A stretch of 63,700 nucleotides of DNA, filler included, from Octopus bimaculoides (lineage: Eukaryota): assembly GCF_001194135.2 (NCBI RefSeq). It is 7 parts of 6 records of this genome, joined end to end, with 100 filler letters (N's around TTAATTAATTAA, not from the genome) between each part and the next. Parts side by side here need not be neighbours in the genome. Positions count along the whole stretch, not along the records: positions 1 to 9,155 come from NC_068986.1; 6 more parts are not named here. One strand, 5' to 3'. Below, piece after piece: positions 1 to 9,199 of the stretch. Position 1 is the stretch's first letter. Each line of letters opens with the position of its first letter. A program made the translations under genes and the position numbers. The notes beneath the pieces were generated by a model, which had not been told where the DNA came from, made no database searches, and saw only the letters and a program-made list of their open reading frames with translations.

Positions 1-613
1 TATGTATATATATATACATTTATATATTCAAAACGATATATAATTGAAGCGTTAACAATATAGAATATTAGGATATTTAACTCCCCTCCTACTTTACGTG
101 CTTACGTTCCATTCTTAAGCCCGAAGCGCAACCAGGGGGGCATGCGGACCAACATCGGAAACACTTCTTTACAGGCAAACATCAATTGGATTTCGTATGC
201 ATGCTTGGAAATGTGGGAATCATTATGCGAAACAAAAAAAAATACCTTTAATGTTTTAGGAATATGCCTGCTGTAAGACTGATGTTCAAAATTATATGTA
301 GCGTGTACCATATTTTCTTTTGCAAGAGCTGTAAAATTCTCTAATAGTGTATGTATTATCAATTTTTTTCAAACCATAATGTTGTAGTTCTCTATATACA
401 CTAACACTTGCATATTTAGAACACAGAGTGAGGTGTCACCAGTCTCTCACATAATAGAAGTTTTTAAAATGTGCCTGAGATGACATTTAATGAGTGTATC
501 ACCGTAAACTTGCAATTAGAGATTAAATATTGCTTATTAAGGGAAATTAATTTAGACATCGAGAACATTAAAATATTTTAACGTTGATTGGTTAATGCAT
601 TTTATTGAAAAAT

Positions 614-642
614 ATGCTTAGAATGATTTTGGAAGATATTAG
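614..642 (+). CDS. Possible upstream coding exon end (MLRMILEDI-R)
   Basis: Consensus donor AG|GTGAGT at 643; the frame from ATG614 ends in phase 2, matching the phase-2 start of exon A1. No other support. Confidence 0.3.
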
Positions 643-1562
643 GTGAGTGGTGGTGTTATACTCACCTATATACAAGATACATTAACAAACAATTTTTCAA
701 GAAAAGTCCACTCTTACACAGAGAAATGATAATTAGAATGCACAGTGCATGTAGGATTCACTTACACACAATCACGTTTTATTAATAAAAATATTTAAGA
801 ACAAAAAACAAAAAATATCAAATTTTTTGCAACAGGAAAAGCCAATGATTGCGAAAGCAAGTACATCTCAATTTGTCATTCAGCCAAGTCGAAATACCCA
901 TTTACATATCCTGATATTAAACTCTGCCAGTACGTATATACATATATATATTTATTTATTAATGCTATTTCTCTCATCTAATACATAAAGTTATAGTTTT
1001 TGTATAAAGCAACAGCTGCGTGGCTTCGGATTTAGTTCCACGAACACATTAGAAAGTGTCTAGCCCCGATTGAATAATACTTTGCAACCCAATATATTAA
1101 GTAGAAGCTTTGTGGATAAACTGTGTAATATCACATGGTACAAGACTAGAAATACTCGTTGGGAAATGAGTAGTTCATAAAGCTACTTTATCAGATTGGC
1201 ACTAGATATATATCGAGGTAGAATGGCGCATGTTAACCACATTCAGATTTAAATACACGTTTAGCTGATTAATAAACACAAAGCTGATTTTTCCGAAATG
1301 GACCAGTATAGCTATATGAGGCAAGACAGCAGACTGTTTTATATAACTCCTGCCTCTGAATACGAATAATTTATTAAATCCAGGAAGTATGACAGGATAC
1401 TTTTACAAAGCAGTATATTGATCTCAGAATGTAAATAAAGATGATATGAAACTGGTACATATTTTTTTTTTTATCAACCCTCAAATTTAAAATTTATGAT
1501 TAAGTTTTCGGAGTTTATTTTAATTTTAAAAAACATATTTACTGATTTATTTTCAACATCAG

Positions 1563-1654
1563 GCGCATTGTCGAGTATCAAAGGTGTGCTGACCACCTCA
1601 AAGACGAACATTGCTTTGAAGCATTCCGAGGACTCTTTAGAATTACTTGCCCTG
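1563..1654 (+). CDS. Coding exon A1 of an unassigned Cys-rich repeat protein (RIVEYQRCADHLKDEHCFEAFRGLFRITCP)
   Basis: Acceptor ...ttttcaacatcAG| and donor |GTAAGA; 92 nt, phase 2 to phase 1, open frame; paralogous exon at 7709-7800 has identical length, phase and Cys positions. Confidence 0.88.
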
Positions 1655-1860
1655 GTAAGATTACATTATTAGACTTGTATTATTAGCAAAATATTATCCT
1701 TGTCATCATTGTAACATCTAATATAAATTACTAATTATGACATGGATTAAGACCGGAATTAAATGTTGATTCATCTACTCATCTAATATTTCATCAAACT
1801 GTCCAAAGGTTATAGCAAAAACAAATAATATGTTGAAATTTGTATATTTTATTTTTTCAG

Positions 1861-1951
1861 GGAAAGACAATTGCATAGAGTTTTTCAAAGTATATTGTCA
1901 ACAAGCCGAAGAAATGTTTCCAGTACAATCACCAGATAAGGATTTCTGCAA
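1861..1951 (+). CDS. Coding exon B1 (GKDNCIEFFKVYCQQAEEMFPVQSPDKDFCK)
   Basis: Acceptor ttttattttttcAG| and donor |GTATAT; 91 nt, phase 1 to phase 2; splices in frame to A1; paralogue at 7944-8034. Confidence 0.88.
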
Positions 1952-2064
1952 GTATATATGTTGCTTTTACTCCTCTGACTATTGTTACTACATCTAATAG
2001 TTATCTGCTTATATCTTTTATTATACAATCAACTATTTATTATTAATGTTTGTATTATTGGTTA

Positions 2065-2281
2065 ATGCGGCGAGGGATCAGAATCGTTACAATGCTGAGC
2101 AAAAATGCGTAGCCGCATTTCGTCCGTCATTATGTTATGTGTTCAAATTCCGTCGAGGTTGATTTTGTCTTTCATCCCTCCGCGGCCCATAAATTGAGTA
2201 CAAGTCGAACACCAGCCGATGAAGTCGACCACCCCGTCCCCTAAAACTGGTAGCTTTGTTCCAAAATTTGAAATGAATATC
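2065..2281 (+). mobile_element. tRNA-derived SINE family A (diverged copy)
   Basis: Aligns to copies at 3332, 24249 and 48301 (cagaatcgtta...gttcaaattccgtcgaggt...tttcatcc). Confidence 0.8.
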
Positions 2282-3331
2282 TGTTATATTGGTAGAAGTC
2301 AAGAAATGCTTACTTGCAGTGCACTAACTTCAATAGGAAACAGTAACTGATTAGTGCTAACTACATCGATTAGTGCTAACAGCTAACACATCTCGACATC
2401 AATGTCACTCGAAACATTTTTTAGCAGGTCAAAAAATACACTGTATATTTCCAGTATATGCACAAGTCCATGAATGTGCGACTAAACCTAATGTTTCTGC
2501 ACGATTCGTGTTAGATTTTAACATATGTATTCTACTGCTTCAGAAAACGCGTTAAAATATATCATATCAAAACTACTATTATTTAAAAAAATTGCTGTTT
2601 GTAAATATGATTAGTAAATAAATTTTCCGTATCTTTCTTCAAGTTATAAATCATGAAACATCATTTCTTTAGAATTTTCTATGCTCACTTCGCTATTATA
2701 TTTATAAATATTATTTTCATTACTAAAGAACCTCTGGATTACAAATGAGACATTGAAATCTATTTACTGTGTTCATTAGAATATATTTTAGCAATCCCAG
2801 ATATATGAACATTATAAAAACGGGGCAATTTCATTTCAGAAGTTAAATAATTTATGGTTCTTGCGCAATGACGTTCCCATATAAGTTATTTTACAGACGC
2901 ATACTAATATATGAAGACTGTGCTAATCTGAAGAAACACAAGTGTGCAGGGCACTTTCACCTAATTTCTCTCGTGAATTGTTATGAAGGTAATTTTTTTT
3001 TAATCCATTTAATCGATCTTATTTGGGACAGGGCTGCATAGATGCAATAAATTCCCAACACAATTACATTTGTCAAGTTGCTTTTTACGTTCAATTCCAT
3101 TAATGTTTAAAGCATTGTTGAACTTTAGCAATGTTGGTACGCATTGATTTGCCTTCAGCTCTCAATTCCTGGAGAAGTCATACAGCCGCTGCGATATACT
3201 CTGTTCTAGGTGTTTGATCGGTTGAAAATGTGCACAGATCTCATTTTTCCTATTTCTGTGTGCGTCTACGTTTCCCCTGTCTAGCTCTCTCCTCTGGCTC
3301 ACAGATTTATGCTATATTCTTTTACTTGTCT

Positions 3332-3546
3332 AAGGTGGTGAGTTATTAGAAACGTTAGCACGCCGGACGAAATGCTTAGCGGCATTTCGTCTGTCTTTAC
3401 GTTCTGAGTTCAAATTCCACCGAGGTCGACTTTGCCTTCCATCCTTTCGGGATCGGTAAATTAAGTACCAGTTGCGTACTGGTGTCGATCTAATCGACTG
3501 GCCTCTCCACAAAAATTTCGGGCCTTGTGCCTAGAGTAGAAAAGGT
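3332..3546 (+). mobile_element. SINE family A
   Basis: gaaacgttagcacgccgg...gagttcaaattccaccgaggtcgactttgccttccatcctttcggg; B-box-like GTTCAAATTCC; multicopy in the window. Confidence 0.9.
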
Positions 3547-3942
3547 TATTTTACTTGTTTTATTCATTAGCCTGTGGCGATGATGGGGTCAACGCCTTAT
3601 TAAGTTTTAGTCGAGCAAATCGACACTAGTACCTCTTTTAAAACCTAGTATTTACTCTATCGTCTCTTGTGCCGAACCGCTACGATCCGAGGACATAACC
3701 ACACTAACACCAGTTGTCAAGTGGTGGTGGGTGACAAACACAGACATAAAATCATGCATACACACACACACACACACATACATACATACATACATACATA
3801 CATACATACATGTATGTATGTATGTATGTGCACGACGGCCTTTTATCAGTTTCCGTCCACCAAACCCACTCACAAGATTTCGGTCGGACACTTAGCCTGA
3901 AACATGTGACTGAGAAGCAAACTTCTTACCACGTAGTCAATG
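3547..3942 (-). mobile_element. SINE family B with internal (CA)/(TACA) microsatellite
   Basis: Reverse complement of the family seen intact at 53660-54052 (gccgaaccgcta, cagttgtcaag, cagtttccgtc.accaaa.ccactcacaag). Confidence 0.85.
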
Positions 3943-3980
3943 TTCTTTGTTAAGTTACTAGATCTTGCTAAATATGAATA

Positions 3981-4625
3981 GAGGGTGCGTAATATATTTG
4001 AGGAAGATTTTTTATTTATAAAAAAAATAAAGCAGTTATATAATAACACATAATAACTTCATTAAAAAAAAGCTATGGGGATAAAAATAAACATTCTTTT
4101 CCATAATGTTATTCAATAAATCCACCTTCAGCTTCAACAACTGCTTCTGTATGAGATCTAAATCTAAATGCTCGAATCAAGGGGTCTTGGTTCATTTCGG
4201 ACGTTACTCTGACTGTGGCAGCTTTCAAAGAATCTTTGGTGTTCATTGACCTCTCTCTCAACAACGCTCCACATGTAATAATCCAATGGATTGAGATCTG
4301 GGGAATTAGAAGGCCAAATATTAGGGGTTGTGTGACCATGAAAATGTTCAGCCATCCATTCCTGTGTTACTAGAGGCATGCACGATAGTCTGACGTTAGA
4401 TGTTGACACTAGAATGGCTAATCTACGCGGATAGAGGATCGTGCATTCTTTATGTCTCTATCGTATTACGATATCCGCATAGTGTGCATACCATCTCCTT
4501 TTGTAATTTCTGTAACTGAAGTGGCTGGACAGTACACGGTTGGAATATGAAAGGAACTATGAAACACAGTGATCTTCAGGCCTTTTGTGCAACAGCACAC
4601 TTCAATTTCAATAAAATCATACCTC
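3981..4625 (-). mobile_element. Tc1/mariner-superfamily transposase remnant
   Basis: WPSNSPDLNPLDYYMWSVVE motif on the minus strand (the WP..SPDLNP.D signature); TA-gagggtg terminus at 3979. Confidence 0.8.
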
Positions 4626-4669
4626 ATCATGTACAAAGTATATAGCATATATATCATGTATATACAAAT

Positions 4670-4985
4670 AAGGTGTGGCCATGTGGTGAGAAATTTAATT
4701 CCAAACCGTATGGATCCAGGTTCGGTTCAATGTCGTGGCACATTGAGCAAGCGTCTTCTACTACAGATGATAGACAGAGATTGAAAGAGAAGTGTGTGTC
4801 GTTGTGTCTTTATGTTTGGGTTTGACCTCCACCAGCGATTGACAACAGGTGTTGGTGTCTTTATGCCAGTGTAACTTAACGGTTCGACAGAACAGATGCT
4901 AAAAAAGCATAAGAACTAAATATTCTTCAAAGTGGTGCCCCAACATGGTAGTAGTCTATTGAATGAAGCAAGGAAAAGACAAACG
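4670..4985 (+). mobile_element. SINE family B (diverged, internally deleted)
   Basis: gtggccatgtggtgagaa...gtggcacattgagcaagcgtcttcta...gtaacttaacggttcgac...ggtgccccaacatgg. Confidence 0.8.
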
Positions 4986-5271
4986 ATATATACCTGCTAC
5001 CTGCTGCCAAGAGTAAAAAAGAGAGATAGGGATAGACAGAAAAAAGGAAAATATTCCTTGTATATGAAAACTATGGAAATATTTATAAAAAAAAAAACGT
5101 TTCATTTAATTTTTCCATAATTTAGTTGTTTTTCATTTTTTACACTGAGTTGAAAAAGTCGCAAAGATTGAAACCGGTACTAAAATGTTCTTCATAAAAT
5201 TATTTTAGTATTTTCTACTTTGTCTTATTTTCCTTATATATATATTACATGTATATTAAATATGTATACTA

Positions 5272-5804
5272 TTCTATAACTTTGAGATGAGGAATTCTGT
5301 ACATTATTTACAATGGACGGATAGATGTCCTCGCCTTGTTTGTTGTTATCACAACGTTTCGGCTGATGTAGTCTCAGCCTTCATCAGGTGTTCTGATGGA
5401 ATTTCAAAGCAAACCCTTTATCTGATTAATGGAGTACACTGCTCTCATTCCTAAGGTATGTTGCTGATGTTATTTTTTTCTGTTGCTGTCATTTTTCAAG
5501 TCACTGCCTCAGATTGAACTTATGCTATATGCTCGTCGGCATATAGCGTAGTGGATAAGAGCACGGTTTACTAAACATCGGATTCTAAGTTCAATCCCAG
5601 GCAATGACTGGAAAAATAATATCAGCGGGGAAATACCATCAGCAACATACCTTAGGAATGAGAACAGTGTACCCCATTAGTCAAATGAAGAGTTGGGTTC
5701 TAAATTCCACCAGAAAACCTGTTGAAAGCTGGAGAGTACATCAGCCGAAACCTTGTGTTAATAACAAACAAGGTAAGGATAACTATCTGTCCATTGTAAA
5801 TAAT
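5272..5804. mobile_element. Palindromic tRNA-head / hammerhead-tail retroelement, copy 1
   Basis: Left arm 5272-5525 is the reverse complement of right arm 5538-5804; A/B-box head at 5538-5610; homologous to 56482-57096. Confidence 0.85.
5350..5390 (-). ncRNA. Minimal type-I hammerhead ribozyme motif (core intact)
   Basis: Minus strand reads CAC-CUGAUGA-A-GGCUGA(gacuaca)UCAGCC-GAAA-C-GUU-GUG: core CUGANGA, stem II, GAAA, palindromic ACGU stem III, short stem I CAC/GUG. Confidence 0.7.
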
Positions 5805-6124
5805 TTTCAATTAATATGTATATAGACACATACATAAATATAAATATACATCCATGCGCACTTGTGTGTGTGTACATACATAACCATACACGCATAAATA
5901 TAAGATATAATTAAAGCGACTGAAGCAGTGTTAATACCAAAAGATAAAATGTAAACGCACCACAAAACAATATGAAAGATTCTCTCATGGTAAATATCGA
6001 ATGACAGTGTTCGAACACGATATCCACTTGTAAGTGATGATAAATTTTACCTTTTGGTATTTTATTTCTGTCGCTTTAATTATTTTTATTTTGTAATAAA
6101 TCCACCGTATATATACACCTTGGA

Positions 6125-6275
6125 CTAGGCCCCGCTCAATGGCAGGATTACCAAGTTTTGCTACTTGAGTAGACTGAATTGTTTTGGTCAAGATCACAAC
6201 GCATCGCCTGGTAGAGGAATCAAAAACAGAATCTTAAAATCATGAGTGCAACACGCAATACACTAAATCCTGCGG
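6125..6275 (-). mobile_element. Diverged SINE head related to 51700-51860
   Basis: Minus strand gcaggatttagtgtattgcgtgttgcactcatgatt...accaggcgatgcgttgtgatcttg. Confidence 0.55.
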
Positions 6276-7035
6276 TCACTTGGTAAAATCTATTAATAGT
6301 CCCTGAACACTGACAATTTTTAACACTAATTGGTTAATGATGCTTTACCTAAAAACATGCATACAGCGTTCTTGTAAAATATTAAGAGAGCGAGTGTGAT
6401 GGACTCCTACGTAGAACACACTTTAACAAACACATCTTCAAAAATGCAGCACTTACACCATGAAAACATAACGATGGAGCCAATGATATGTACCATTCAG
6501 ATACACTTCTGCATGGTAACGTAAACTAATACATAATTCGTACAACACAAACACTCCATAAGAGAATTATTGAAAATATAAATATTTACAGGAAACCTAA
6601 AACTATCCTTAAAGTTACCGACATTTTCAAATACACATAACAGCAAAATCCAGAAAATAAACACTATTCTAATAATTATAAACATTTTAAATCTACCTTT
6701 AAGGACTATATCAGTCCAGCAGTTTTTTGTGAGCAATGTCACAAAATTTTCTAACATCCATTCCACCCTCAGATAGCAGATAACTTTGATACAGATTAGA
6801 ACTAAATCTTTAGATTTATGGTGTATCATGCAATATTTCGTGTTTATGGTAAAATTGATAAAGAACTACTATAACAACATTTCGAATTTGTAGGACGTAT
6901 TGATTCGGTTAATTGCCAAGTAAAATACAAGTCAAAATGTTATGAAGCCAAGAAGAAATACCCATTAACATACCCAGATAAGAACAGCTGCTCGTACGTA
7001 AATATATATTTATTCCTATTATTTCTATCATCACT

Positions 7036-7254
7036 AAGGCAGGGAACTGGCAGAATCGTTAGCACGCCGGTCAAATTGCTTTGCGGCATCTCCTCCATCT
7101 TTACGTTCTGAATACAAATTCTGCCGAGGTCAGCTTTGCCATTCATTTTCTCGGGATCGACAAAATAAATACCCGTTGGGCACTAGGGCTGACGGAATCG
7201 ACTTCAACTCTTTCCCGAACTTGTTGGTTTTGTGTCAATATTCGAAATCTATAT
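7036..7254 (+). mobile_element. SINE family A
   Basis: Same head and core as 3332-3546. Confidence 0.85.
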
Positions 7255-7708
7255 TTCTTACATCAAAAGAGGACTACAAATAATTTTCTGGAGTAAAGTA
7301 ATTCACTAGGGTACTGTACTTGATTAGTACTAGATACAGCAATCTCAGGAAGGAGCATTTAAATCACATTCAGGCTTAAACGCAATTTTGAAATATTACA
7401 AAATATAAAGCTGATTTATACCATGTACACTAGTATATGAATGTGGAGCTGGGTAACAAATTGTTATATATAACTCCTACCTCTGACTAGAAATAATTGA
7501 AGTGTGCAAGGAGAATTACACATAAGAGAAATTTGACCTCACAATGTAAATAATTATTTTTATTGCTAGATGTGTAAAACAGGTGCATAAAGTATTTTTA
7601 ACTCAAAAATCCGAAATATCGCCAAACGTAAGAATAATTTTCTTTTGTTTTCTTTTTAATATTGAAATAATGTTTACCGGTTTTTTTTTGTTTGTTTTCA
7701 CCGACCAG

Positions 7709-7800
7709 GCGCCTTACTGTTCTTGAAAAATGTGCTGAAACTTCGAAAGATGAACATTGCATCGAATCATTTAAAAGGGCCCATCAAATTGAATGCCCTC
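7709..7800 (+). CDS. Coding exon A2 (RLTVLEKCAETSKDEHCIESFKRAHQIECP)
   Basis: Acceptor ttgttttcaccgaccAG| and donor |GTAAGA; 92 nt; conserved C..KDEHC..F..I.CP with exon A1. Confidence 0.88.
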
Positions 7801-7943
7801 GTAAGATGATTTTATTAGTCTTGAATCATTGATAAAGTTTTATCTTGAAATCTACCTGAATTATTTCCATCAACTGTCACACAAAATAGTTCTGAAGAAT
7901 TTTAAAGAGTAAAGAAATAAACATTAAATTTTACCTTTTTCAG

Positions 7944-8034
7944 CGAAAGGTGGCTGCATAGAGTTATTCCAAAAATTGTGTCCCGAAGTCGAAAAAGATC
8001 TTCCGATACGATCACCAGATAAGGATTACTGCAG
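7944..8034 (+). CDS. Coding exon B2 (PKGGCIELFQKLCPEVEKDLPIRSPDKDYCR)
   Basis: Acceptor ttttacctttttcAG| and donor |GTGTGT; 91 nt; conserved CIE.F...C...SPDKD.C with exon B1. Confidence 0.88.
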
Positions 8035-8461
8035 GTGTGTATACTATTTTTACACCTCTGACAAGTCTAATTATTATAGCTATCGTTTTCATGTATATTA
8101 TAAATTATATAATAAATTATACATTGGTATCACCCAGTGTTAATTACTAATATTTGTTACATTGGCACAAATATTAGTGCCAAGAAATATGTTCTTGGAA
8201 TGTACTAGATTCAATAGGAATCAGTAACTGACTAATGCTAAAATACATCGATCGGAAATGGTACATTTAGACGACAATACTAGTTAAGCTAACTTGAGAC
8301 ACATAGATATAGGTAATTCCCAACAAAGCTCAAATTCCCAAACGTGCGATTAGGACATTATTTCGCATCAGCTTTTCAAAATACATTTAATACTTCAGAA
8401 ATCTTGTAGTAATATTTCATCATCTCGAAATACGTGCACTTCATAATACTTTTATTTAAAA

Positions 8462-8790
8462 CTAGCAGTATAGCCCGGCTTTGCCCGGGATTAAGTTGAG
8501 ATTATTAAGCTAATCAAGTTCTTTATTTCAAACCAAACTAAGTAACATGACGTCAAATTTGGGCAGAATCAGTTTGCAACTGGAGCGCATGGGTTGGGAG
8601 TTTGATCGGCAAAGGTGATCAGGTTACACATGCCATCCCTTTCAAAACACCACCGCCATCATCTAAACCCTCTTTGCCCATGGGTTAGGAACCCTTCCAG
8701 CAAGGAAAATAGAATGACCAAAAGGGCTCCCGATTCTCTGTGTCAGAAACGGTTCTGTTCAGATCACAACGAAGTCTTAAGTATGTATAT
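8462..8790 (-). mobile_element. Helitron 3' end
   Basis: Minus strand CCCGG-GCAAAG-CCGGG...CTAG|T at 8462; 5' end not identified. Confidence 0.65.
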
Positions 8791-8947
8791 ATATATATAT
8801 ATATATGTTTTGAAATATATTAGCGCGCCAAAACGAAGACTTTTGAATTTTACCATTAAGCTGTAAATAGCAGAACCATATGCACGCGCACCCATGACGG
8901 TGGGCAACTCTGTATACGATTCTGATGATTGCGGTTACATTACAAAT

Positions 8948-9004
8948 CAGGCTGAAGTGGAATGGACAAATGGTAAGATTTGTTAAATCCGAAACCGGTT
9001 CCTG
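8948..9004 (+). ncRNA. Degenerate hammerhead motif in a probable Penelope-like terminal remnant
   Basis: CAGG-CUGAAG(U)-GGA..ACAAAU/AUUUGU..UCC-GAAA-CCGGUU-CCUG; stem I CAGG/CCUG and palindromic ACCGGU stem III; core lacks A9. Confidence 0.5.
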
Positions 9005-9199
9005 TTTAAGAATGCTTTTTTAGGTCATTTTAAATGTCTTGCCCGCTCACGTTTTGGTATGCTGCTATATTTCATGTTGAGAACAATTTAGGTCTTAATA
9101 GACACAAGATGTGATCTATTTCTAGCACATTAATTGTCCACGTTATTGGTCAACGNNNNNNNNNNNNNNNNNNNNNNNNNNNNNNNNNNNNNNNNNNNN

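Follow-up and report, generated by a model that had tools for sequence, protein, structure and literature searches.

The GDNF/GAS1 domain (PF02351, SMART GDNF) has five helices and about ten cysteines, and GFR-alpha and GAS1, which are helical, disulfide-rich and attached by a glycosylphosphatidylinositol (GPI) anchor, belong to a class of co-receptors for cystine-knot ligands in which this extracellular module is repeated two to four times. Prosaposin (four saposin domains) and arrays of EGF or Kazal domains are built like beads on a string, with phase-matched domain borders and tandem exon duplication. The N-terminal domain of the repulsive guidance molecules (RGMs: RGMA, RGMB and RGMC/hemojuvelin; 4UHZ, 4UHY, 4UI1, 6Z3H), in contrast, occurs once per protein and is followed by an RGM_C/von Willebrand D-like domain (a partial vWD with an autocleavage site) and a GPI anchor. 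In RGMB it is a three-helix bundle with three disulfides, and the determinants of its binding to BMP/GDF are an RG[D/N] loop, Leu103 and His106 (PMC7354924). Here we analyse an Octopus bimaculoides locus that encodes a tandem array of a small six-cysteine helical domain and compare it with these systems. The window is the 9.2-kb part (positions 1 to 9,155, from NC_068986.1) of a 63,700-nucleotide (nt) composite stretch of that genome (GCF_001194135.2), and all coordinates count along it unless a locus label is given: L001 is the O. bimaculoides LOC106874482 locus, L002 is LOC128248155, and L003 and L004 are the O. vulgaris P0002 and O. sinensis P0004 loci. The window is an internal slice of LOC106874482, an annotated but unstudied gene, which we judge to encode a real, lineage-restricted, fast-evolving secreted repeat protein whose domain is probably RGM_N-like and whose tandem architecture is new. 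We hold the anatomy of the gene and its domain to be close to certain; the best explanation overall, a secreted, Octopus-restricted, RGM_N-like tandem-array gene with the role of a multivalent binder, we consider likely, since that anatomy must be weighed against inferences about RGM_N ancestry and binding.

Exons, register and fold of the repeat

The window lies at about CM046606.1:89,201,636-89,210,790 on the plus strand, and L001:9379-18533 matches it at 100% identity, with runs of N flanking it on both sides. A preliminary description of this DNA had proposed an unassigned gene of four short exons, A1 (1563-1654), B1 (1861-1951), A2 (7709-7800) and B2 (7944-8034), of 92 nt (A) and 91 nt (B). 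The translation from A1 through B2 is found exactly in RefSeq XP_052824452.1 (LOC106874482, "uncharacterized protein", 401 amino acids (aa)); with the complete identity of the window and L001, the locus is therefore LOC106874482, and the gene already has an annotation. A literature search by locus, accession and family name found no paper on this locus or its relatives in the library searched. Translation bore out the positions, lengths and phases of the four exons, which have AG/GT borders, and it agrees exactly with the first description in cysteine spacing (C-x8-C-x11-C-x5-C-x7-C-x16-C) and in the motifs KDEHC, CIE.F and SPDKD.C.

The module had been thought to occur twice, but three more exons of the same kind lie in the window, two of them between the original pairs, and the array extends further. 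All seven are on the plus strand. B0 (836-929) encodes the first half of domain D0 (helix 1, a YP..PD loop and the start of helix 2) and has AG/GT borders and the correct phases; it is in frame with A1 and with an upstream exon, A-1 (L001:4602-4693), and its orthologue in O. vulgaris and O. sinensis, CESTYRSICTSAKTKYPFTYPDVKLC, is identical at 80 of 94 nt and keeps AG/GT. A1 supplies the second half of D0 (the rest of helix 2, and helix 3), encodes XP_052824452.1 from residue 8 onward and has its orthologue at L003:26056-26147. Domain D1 consists of B1 (first half) and Ax (2897-2988; second half), the latter encoding RILIYEDCANLKKHKCAGHFHLISLVNCYE between AG/GT sites and corresponding to L003:27380-27471. 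Domain D2 consists of Bx (6894-6993; first half), which encodes RIDSVNCQVKYKSKCYEAKKKYPLTYPDKNSC, also between AG/GT sites, and A2 (second half). B2 begins domain D3, whose partner exon A3 lies beyond the assembly gap at L001:20914-21002. B1, Bx and A2 likewise have orthologues in L003. Joined in genomic order, the seven exons form a single frame of 216 codons with no stops (the other two frames are stop-rich), or 3.5 repeats, separated by introns of 633, 206, 945, 3905, 715 and 143 nt. Every intron that precedes an A exon is in phase 2 and every one that precedes a B exon in phase 1. XP_052824452.1 contains six of the seven exons, spliced A1-B1-Ax-Bx-A2-B2, and skips B0. Two further candidates were discarded. 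An upstream A-like exon at 175-272 (C-x8-C-x12-C) is out of frame with B0 and fails to line up with the remaining A exons, and the true partner of B0 is L001:4602-4693, upstream of the assembly gap. At 9128 there is no exon start, the next exon being that at L001:20914.

When a profile of the module was run against 1.84 billion representative proteins it gave nine matches, eight of them from Octopus; the ninth (P0005, 4271 aa, from a metagenome) is a spurious repetitive translation that does not match the domain profile. Every true hit is thus confined to Octopus, and the family is, as far as can be seen, lineage-restricted, as had been suggested at the outset. LOC128248155 (P0001/P0010) lies about 11 kb downstream of LOC106874482 on the same strand, and its product has about nine domains behind a signal peptide. 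We considered it as the missing 5' part of LOC106874482 and ruled this out, as it lies downstream and is a diverged paralogue. Its signal peptide is on a separate short exon (L002 10001-53483), and its model ends "EL*" straight after an A exon, perhaps because it reads through into an intron. Three shorter relatives, P0006, P0007 and P0009, are encoded on other chromosomes. They comprise two to four domains, and their hydrophobic C-terminal tail, judged by eye, resembles a GPI-anchor signal. P0006 and P0007 begin with a signal peptide, and the N-terminus of P0009 looks incomplete. The early proposal that the domain is extracellular is very probably right, given the signal peptides of P0001, P0006 and P0007.

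Could the locus be just the four-exon gene A1-B1-A2-B2, encoding a 122-aa protein of two modules, as first proposed? The shared intron phases do keep that splice form in frame, so that skipping a module leaves the frame intact, and isoforms of the short relatives (the P0007 cluster, for example) differ by whole domains. The annotated transcript, however, has Ax and Bx between the two pairs, both exons are conserved across species, and the array reaches well past both ends of the window; we therefore find it very improbable that these four exons are the gene.

The register of the repeat also differs from that first assigned. Rather than A+B, the structural unit is B+A, and the A+B module is a circular permutation of the real domain. 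We base this on four observations: the B half directly follows the signal peptide in P0001, P0006 and P0007, and these three and P0009 all end with an A half; the RGM_N matches in a Pfam scan of the window protein run from B into A; B1+Ax gives a confident model; and the linker of the two-domain model falls at the A-to-B exon junction. In an alignment of 29 domains the unit is about 60 residues long, with the six cysteines, P20, D25 and R31 invariant or nearly so. From this alignment AlphaFold models B1+Ax as a three-helix bundle (predicted local distance difference test (pLDDT) 92.3, predicted template modelling score (pTM) 0.78), in accord with the original guess of a helical fold; the predicted helices span residues 3-18, 28-41 and 46-58 and carry two cysteines each. 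The six cysteines presumably form three disulfides. A two-domain model (pLDDT 88, pTM 0.54) suggests confidently predicted domains of uncertain mutual orientation, like beads on a string. Since phase-1 introns mark the domain borders and a phase-2 intron divides each domain internally, whole domains can be gained, lost or skipped in frame.

Growth and constraint of the array

The preliminary description had pointed to the neighbouring scaffold as a place for more modules, and these are present. In L001 five module exons upstream, the seven of the window and the next exon downstream make a 13-exon chain, all with AG/GT borders and in one frame with no stops. The array comprises 9.5 or more domains in O. 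bimaculoides. In O. vulgaris it has at least 14.5, and 29 alternating A and B exons, with AG/GT at the positions that the phases require, span 46 kb and run off the 5' end of the locus. Comparison of the window with itself gave five collinear matches of 64-75% identity, introns included (563-703 with 6305-6444, 848-949 with 6912-7013, 1169-1698 with 7297-7844, 1843-1979 with 7925-8062 and 2276-2370 with 8149-8252). These define two copies, both on the plus strand (563-2370 and 6305-8252), of a B-A-B-A unit of about 6 kb with its introns, and a third copy lies upstream of the window at L001:2238-4693. Because the collinear matches include introns, the sequence indicates that the array grew by tandem duplication of this four-exon, two-domain unit together with its introns. 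The ratio of nonsynonymous to synonymous substitution rates (dN/dS) between paralogous domains ranges from 0.24 to 1.15.

The same array recurs in O. vulgaris and O. sinensis with every exon matched. The window aligns with L003:24496-33261 at about 87% identity, introns included, and its seven exons are 84-89% identical to those of O. vulgaris (86% overall), no higher than the introns; at the protein level identity is 73%, with a dN/dS of 0.81 (bootstrap 0.48-1.46). These values, together with the odd start of the RefSeq model (below), are what might be cited in favour of a decaying pseudogene array or of chance fragments of open reading frame (ORF). Yet in the O. vulgaris orthologue all seven exons have the same lengths, 14 of 14 splice sites are AG/GT and 21 of 21 cysteines are retained; no stop interrupts the 216 codons in either species, or the 13 exons in L001. 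In simulated neutral drift to 14% divergence, the absence of stops and retention of all cysteines occurred in 5e-6 of trials, and the 28 splice-site bases were retained with P = 0.015; the joint neutral probability of frame, cysteines and splice sites is about 1e-7. The pseudogene explanation is thus effectively refuted, and we give it almost no credence. Since frame, cysteines and splice sites are kept despite near-neutral identity, the disulfide scaffold is strongly constrained, with the remaining surface changing almost freely. The alignment with O. vulgaris ends at 8464, and the last ~690 nt (8465-9155) are without an orthologous match in L003; this segment, beside the assembly gap, could have been inserted in one lineage.

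From the conserved exon chain one would expect a protein of about 900-1100 aa; the gene models at the array locus in the three octopus genomes are fragments of 401, 205 and 147 aa that all lack a signal peptide. That such short exons are missed by ORF tracks had been noted before, and arrays of ~90-nt exons slip past gene finders as well; the locus is mis-modelled in all three species. The first coding exon of XP_052824452.1, MILEDIR (624-644, plus strand, seven codons), is probably not the true start. It yields no signal peptide, the matching sequence in the duplicated copy belongs to an intron, and its donor GT is GA in O. vulgaris and O. sinensis, the former also having a 1-nt deletion after the ATG. 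Because in-frame module exons continue upstream and this donor is not conserved, the annotated start is doubtful, and the RefSeq model is probably 5'-truncated. The O. vulgaris CAI9724703 (L003 10001-50141) and O. sinensis XP_036359395 (L004) models have an intronic ATG start (MSKS + VAVEDSC), and CAI9724703 translates one A-type exon in the wrong frame (…SVLRDSKINIASNPFKEPIKLLAQ).

Relationship to RGM_N and other families

The preliminary description had found no known fold that matches the cysteine pattern. For the saposin-like fold, the insect odorant-binding proteins and the other six-cysteine helical folds named there, Pfam indeed gives no match (E<=10 for the window protein, E<=1 for the 29 single domains). 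The build of the octopus array resembles that of prosaposin and of the EGF and Kazal arrays described above, but their cysteine patterns and folds differ from that of the octopus domain and none of them is hit in Pfam, so that the analogy is one of construction only. One family does recur. Among 24,736 Pfam models scanned, RGM_N (PF06535; gathering cut-off 24.2 bits) is matched by 15 of the 29 single domains at E<=1, and no other family recurs; the single domain D1 scores 19.5 bits, below the cut-off, and two relatives score above it (P0004, 29.1 bits; P0009, 37.9 bits). RGM_N is no longer matched when P0009 and P0004 are reversed or shuffled with their cysteines kept in place. When two domain profiles were searched against 177,635 distinct PDB sequences, RGMB N-domain chains made up all four hits of the first and four of the five of the second (E 0.01-0.19), the fifth being an antibody chain at E 2. 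Finally, hhalign against the N-domains of human RGMA, RGMB and RGMC (sequences verified as identical to the PDB chains) gives P 0.0014 over 31 columns; in 300 column shuffles the real score was never attained.

The octopus domain also resembles the RGM N-terminal domain in kind. Both are about 60-70 residues long, and the model of the octopus domain has, as in RGM_N, three predicted helices with six invariant cysteines, two per helix. The two share the central motif D-x2-[FY]-C-x2-L-x2-Y-x2-C-x7-C and have an identical C-x8-C-x7-C spacing, and both occur in an extracellular setting, with GPI-like tails on the small octopus relatives as in RGMs. They differ in that the octopus domain is arrayed in tandem, with copy numbers from 2 to more than 14, whereas RGM_N occurs once per RGM, and in that these arrays lack RGM_C, for which Pfam gives no hit in P0001, P0002, P0004, P0006-P0009 or P0011. 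Being a pure tandem array that lacks RGM_C, the octopus protein does not count as an RGM; its repeat is probably RGM_N-like, set in an architecture that is new. Helix 3 is moreover about 10 residues shorter in the octopus domain, the cysteine spacing is x7 in helix 1 (x4 in RGMs) and x11 in helix 3 (x21 in RGMs), and the domain does not retain the residues with which RGMs contact BMP/GDF (the RG[D/N]L loop and His106).

A number of results weigh against our interpretation of the locus as a secreted RGM_N-like array with fast-evolving surfaces. In the Pfam scan the 216-aa window protein matches RGM_N alone, but at 17.5 bits (E 0.005) and XP_052824452.1 at 15.8 bits, both below the cut-off, and the above-cut-off scores of P0004 and P0009 are sums of several weak repeat matches. 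A reversed control gave a match to PML_C, so repeat proteins can yield spurious matches at about 1e-5. The hhalign probability is just 18-19%, and the likeness is local, being limited to the ~31 columns around the central motif. Foldseek against the PDB, with both models, returned no RGM chain and nothing at E<2, although it is weak on 60-residue helical bundles. After the fifth cysteine the octopus domains have AGHF, FEAF or IESF rather than RG[D/N]L, and the His106 position is not conserved. A signal-peptide exon for LOC106874482, which the preliminary description had proposed to look for nearby, was not found in the available sequence. The dN/dS near 1, lastly, fits relaxed constraint as well as it fits diversifying selection.

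An alternative is that the domain arose de novo in octopuses and resembles RGM_N by convergence, from the packing of three short helices with three disulfides. Such an origin would be consistent with the failure to find homologues outside Octopus, with the Foldseek result, with the low hhalign probability over so few columns and with the differing cysteine spacings of helices 1 and 3. It accounts less readily for RGM_N being the sole recurring Pfam family and for the dominance of RGMB among the PDB hits, for the loss of the match on cysteine-keeping shuffles and the failure of column shuffles to equal the real score, or for the identical C-x8-C-x7-C spacing, the two cysteines per helix and the GPI-like tails of the small members. 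We consider convergence rather unlikely but a serious alternative, and on balance favour, with some reserve, the view that the octopus domain is related to the RGM N-terminal domain, either as its descendant or through a common ancestor, as the sequence comparisons suggest.

A different assignment is suggested by UniProt, which names A0A0L8GPX5 (P0006) "GDNF/GAS1 domain-containing protein"; with RGM_N and RGMB, this name is a third pointer to a described family that the preliminary description lacked. If correct, it would place the domain in the GDNF-receptor/GAS1 (GFR-alpha-like) family instead of with RGM_N, and the helical, disulfide-rich, GPI-anchored nature of GFR-alpha and GAS1 speaks for it. 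But Pfam PF02351 is absent from every protein and every single domain (E<=1 to 10), and no GFR-alpha, GFRAL or GAS1 chain appears in the PDB profile searches (E<=10) or in Foldseek. The GDNF/GAS1 domain is also larger, with about ten cysteines in five helices, versus six in three here. The UniProt name must rest on a signature other than PF02351, and we regard membership of this family as improbable.

Other sequence features and proposed role

The introns of the window contain several repeated elements. A dispersed element of ~150 nt occurs three times (2063-2205, 3331-3499 and 7052-7203; copies 74-78% identical) and in many more copies in the O. vulgaris locus; it resembles a short interspersed element and is not recognised by ARAGORN or Rfam, whose scans of the window for transfer RNAs and Rfam families found nothing. 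In the 3.9-kb Ax-Bx intron, an 81-aa ORF on the minus strand (4164-4409) with a WPSNSPDLNPLDYYMW motif matches Pfam DDE_3 below the cut-off (E 4.5e-4) and appears to be a remnant of a Tc1/mariner-type DDE transposase. The same intron has a large foldback at 5298-5809, with nested inverted repeats (arms of 48-101 nt, 77-86% complementary), that resembles a miniature inverted-repeat transposable element or hairpin element. A palindromic (CATA)n/(TGTA)n microsatellite and a (TA)n run are present at 3775-3830 and 8786-8806. Beyond the paralogue, a further gene with a 704-aa product begins 3.3 kb past LOC128248155 (L002 56803 onward).

As the paralogue LOC128248155 has a signal peptide, we infer that the product of LOC106874482 would be secreted. 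Each domain might then present an independent binding surface, and the protein may act as a beads-on-a-string, multivalent extracellular binder in which the disulfide scaffold stays fixed and the array is enlarged by unit duplication while the surfaces evolve fast. Its ligand would differ from those of the RGMs, since the BMP-contact residues are not kept; a BMP-type ligand is conceivable by ancestry, yet those residues lend it no support. We put this role forward tentatively. A bolder extension is that an RGM N-domain was freed and expanded in octopuses into a small GPI-anchored branch and giant secreted arrays (15 or more copies) that serve as multivalent traps or co-receptors for cystine-knot (TGF-beta/BMP-type) or new ligands under diversifying selection. 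We think this unlikely in its entirety; if true, it would be the first RGM_N-type domain outside the RGMs.

A fixed scaffold, near-neutral surfaces and tandem expansion within one lineage fit binders of an immune, reproductive, secretory or chemosensory kind, and this evolutionary pattern makes the family a candidate for an octopus-specific trait. If the link to RGM_N holds, a domain thought to be exclusive to RGMs has been reused in octopuses as a tandem repeat, and these arrays would constitute a natural experiment in the re-use of a growth-factor-binding module.

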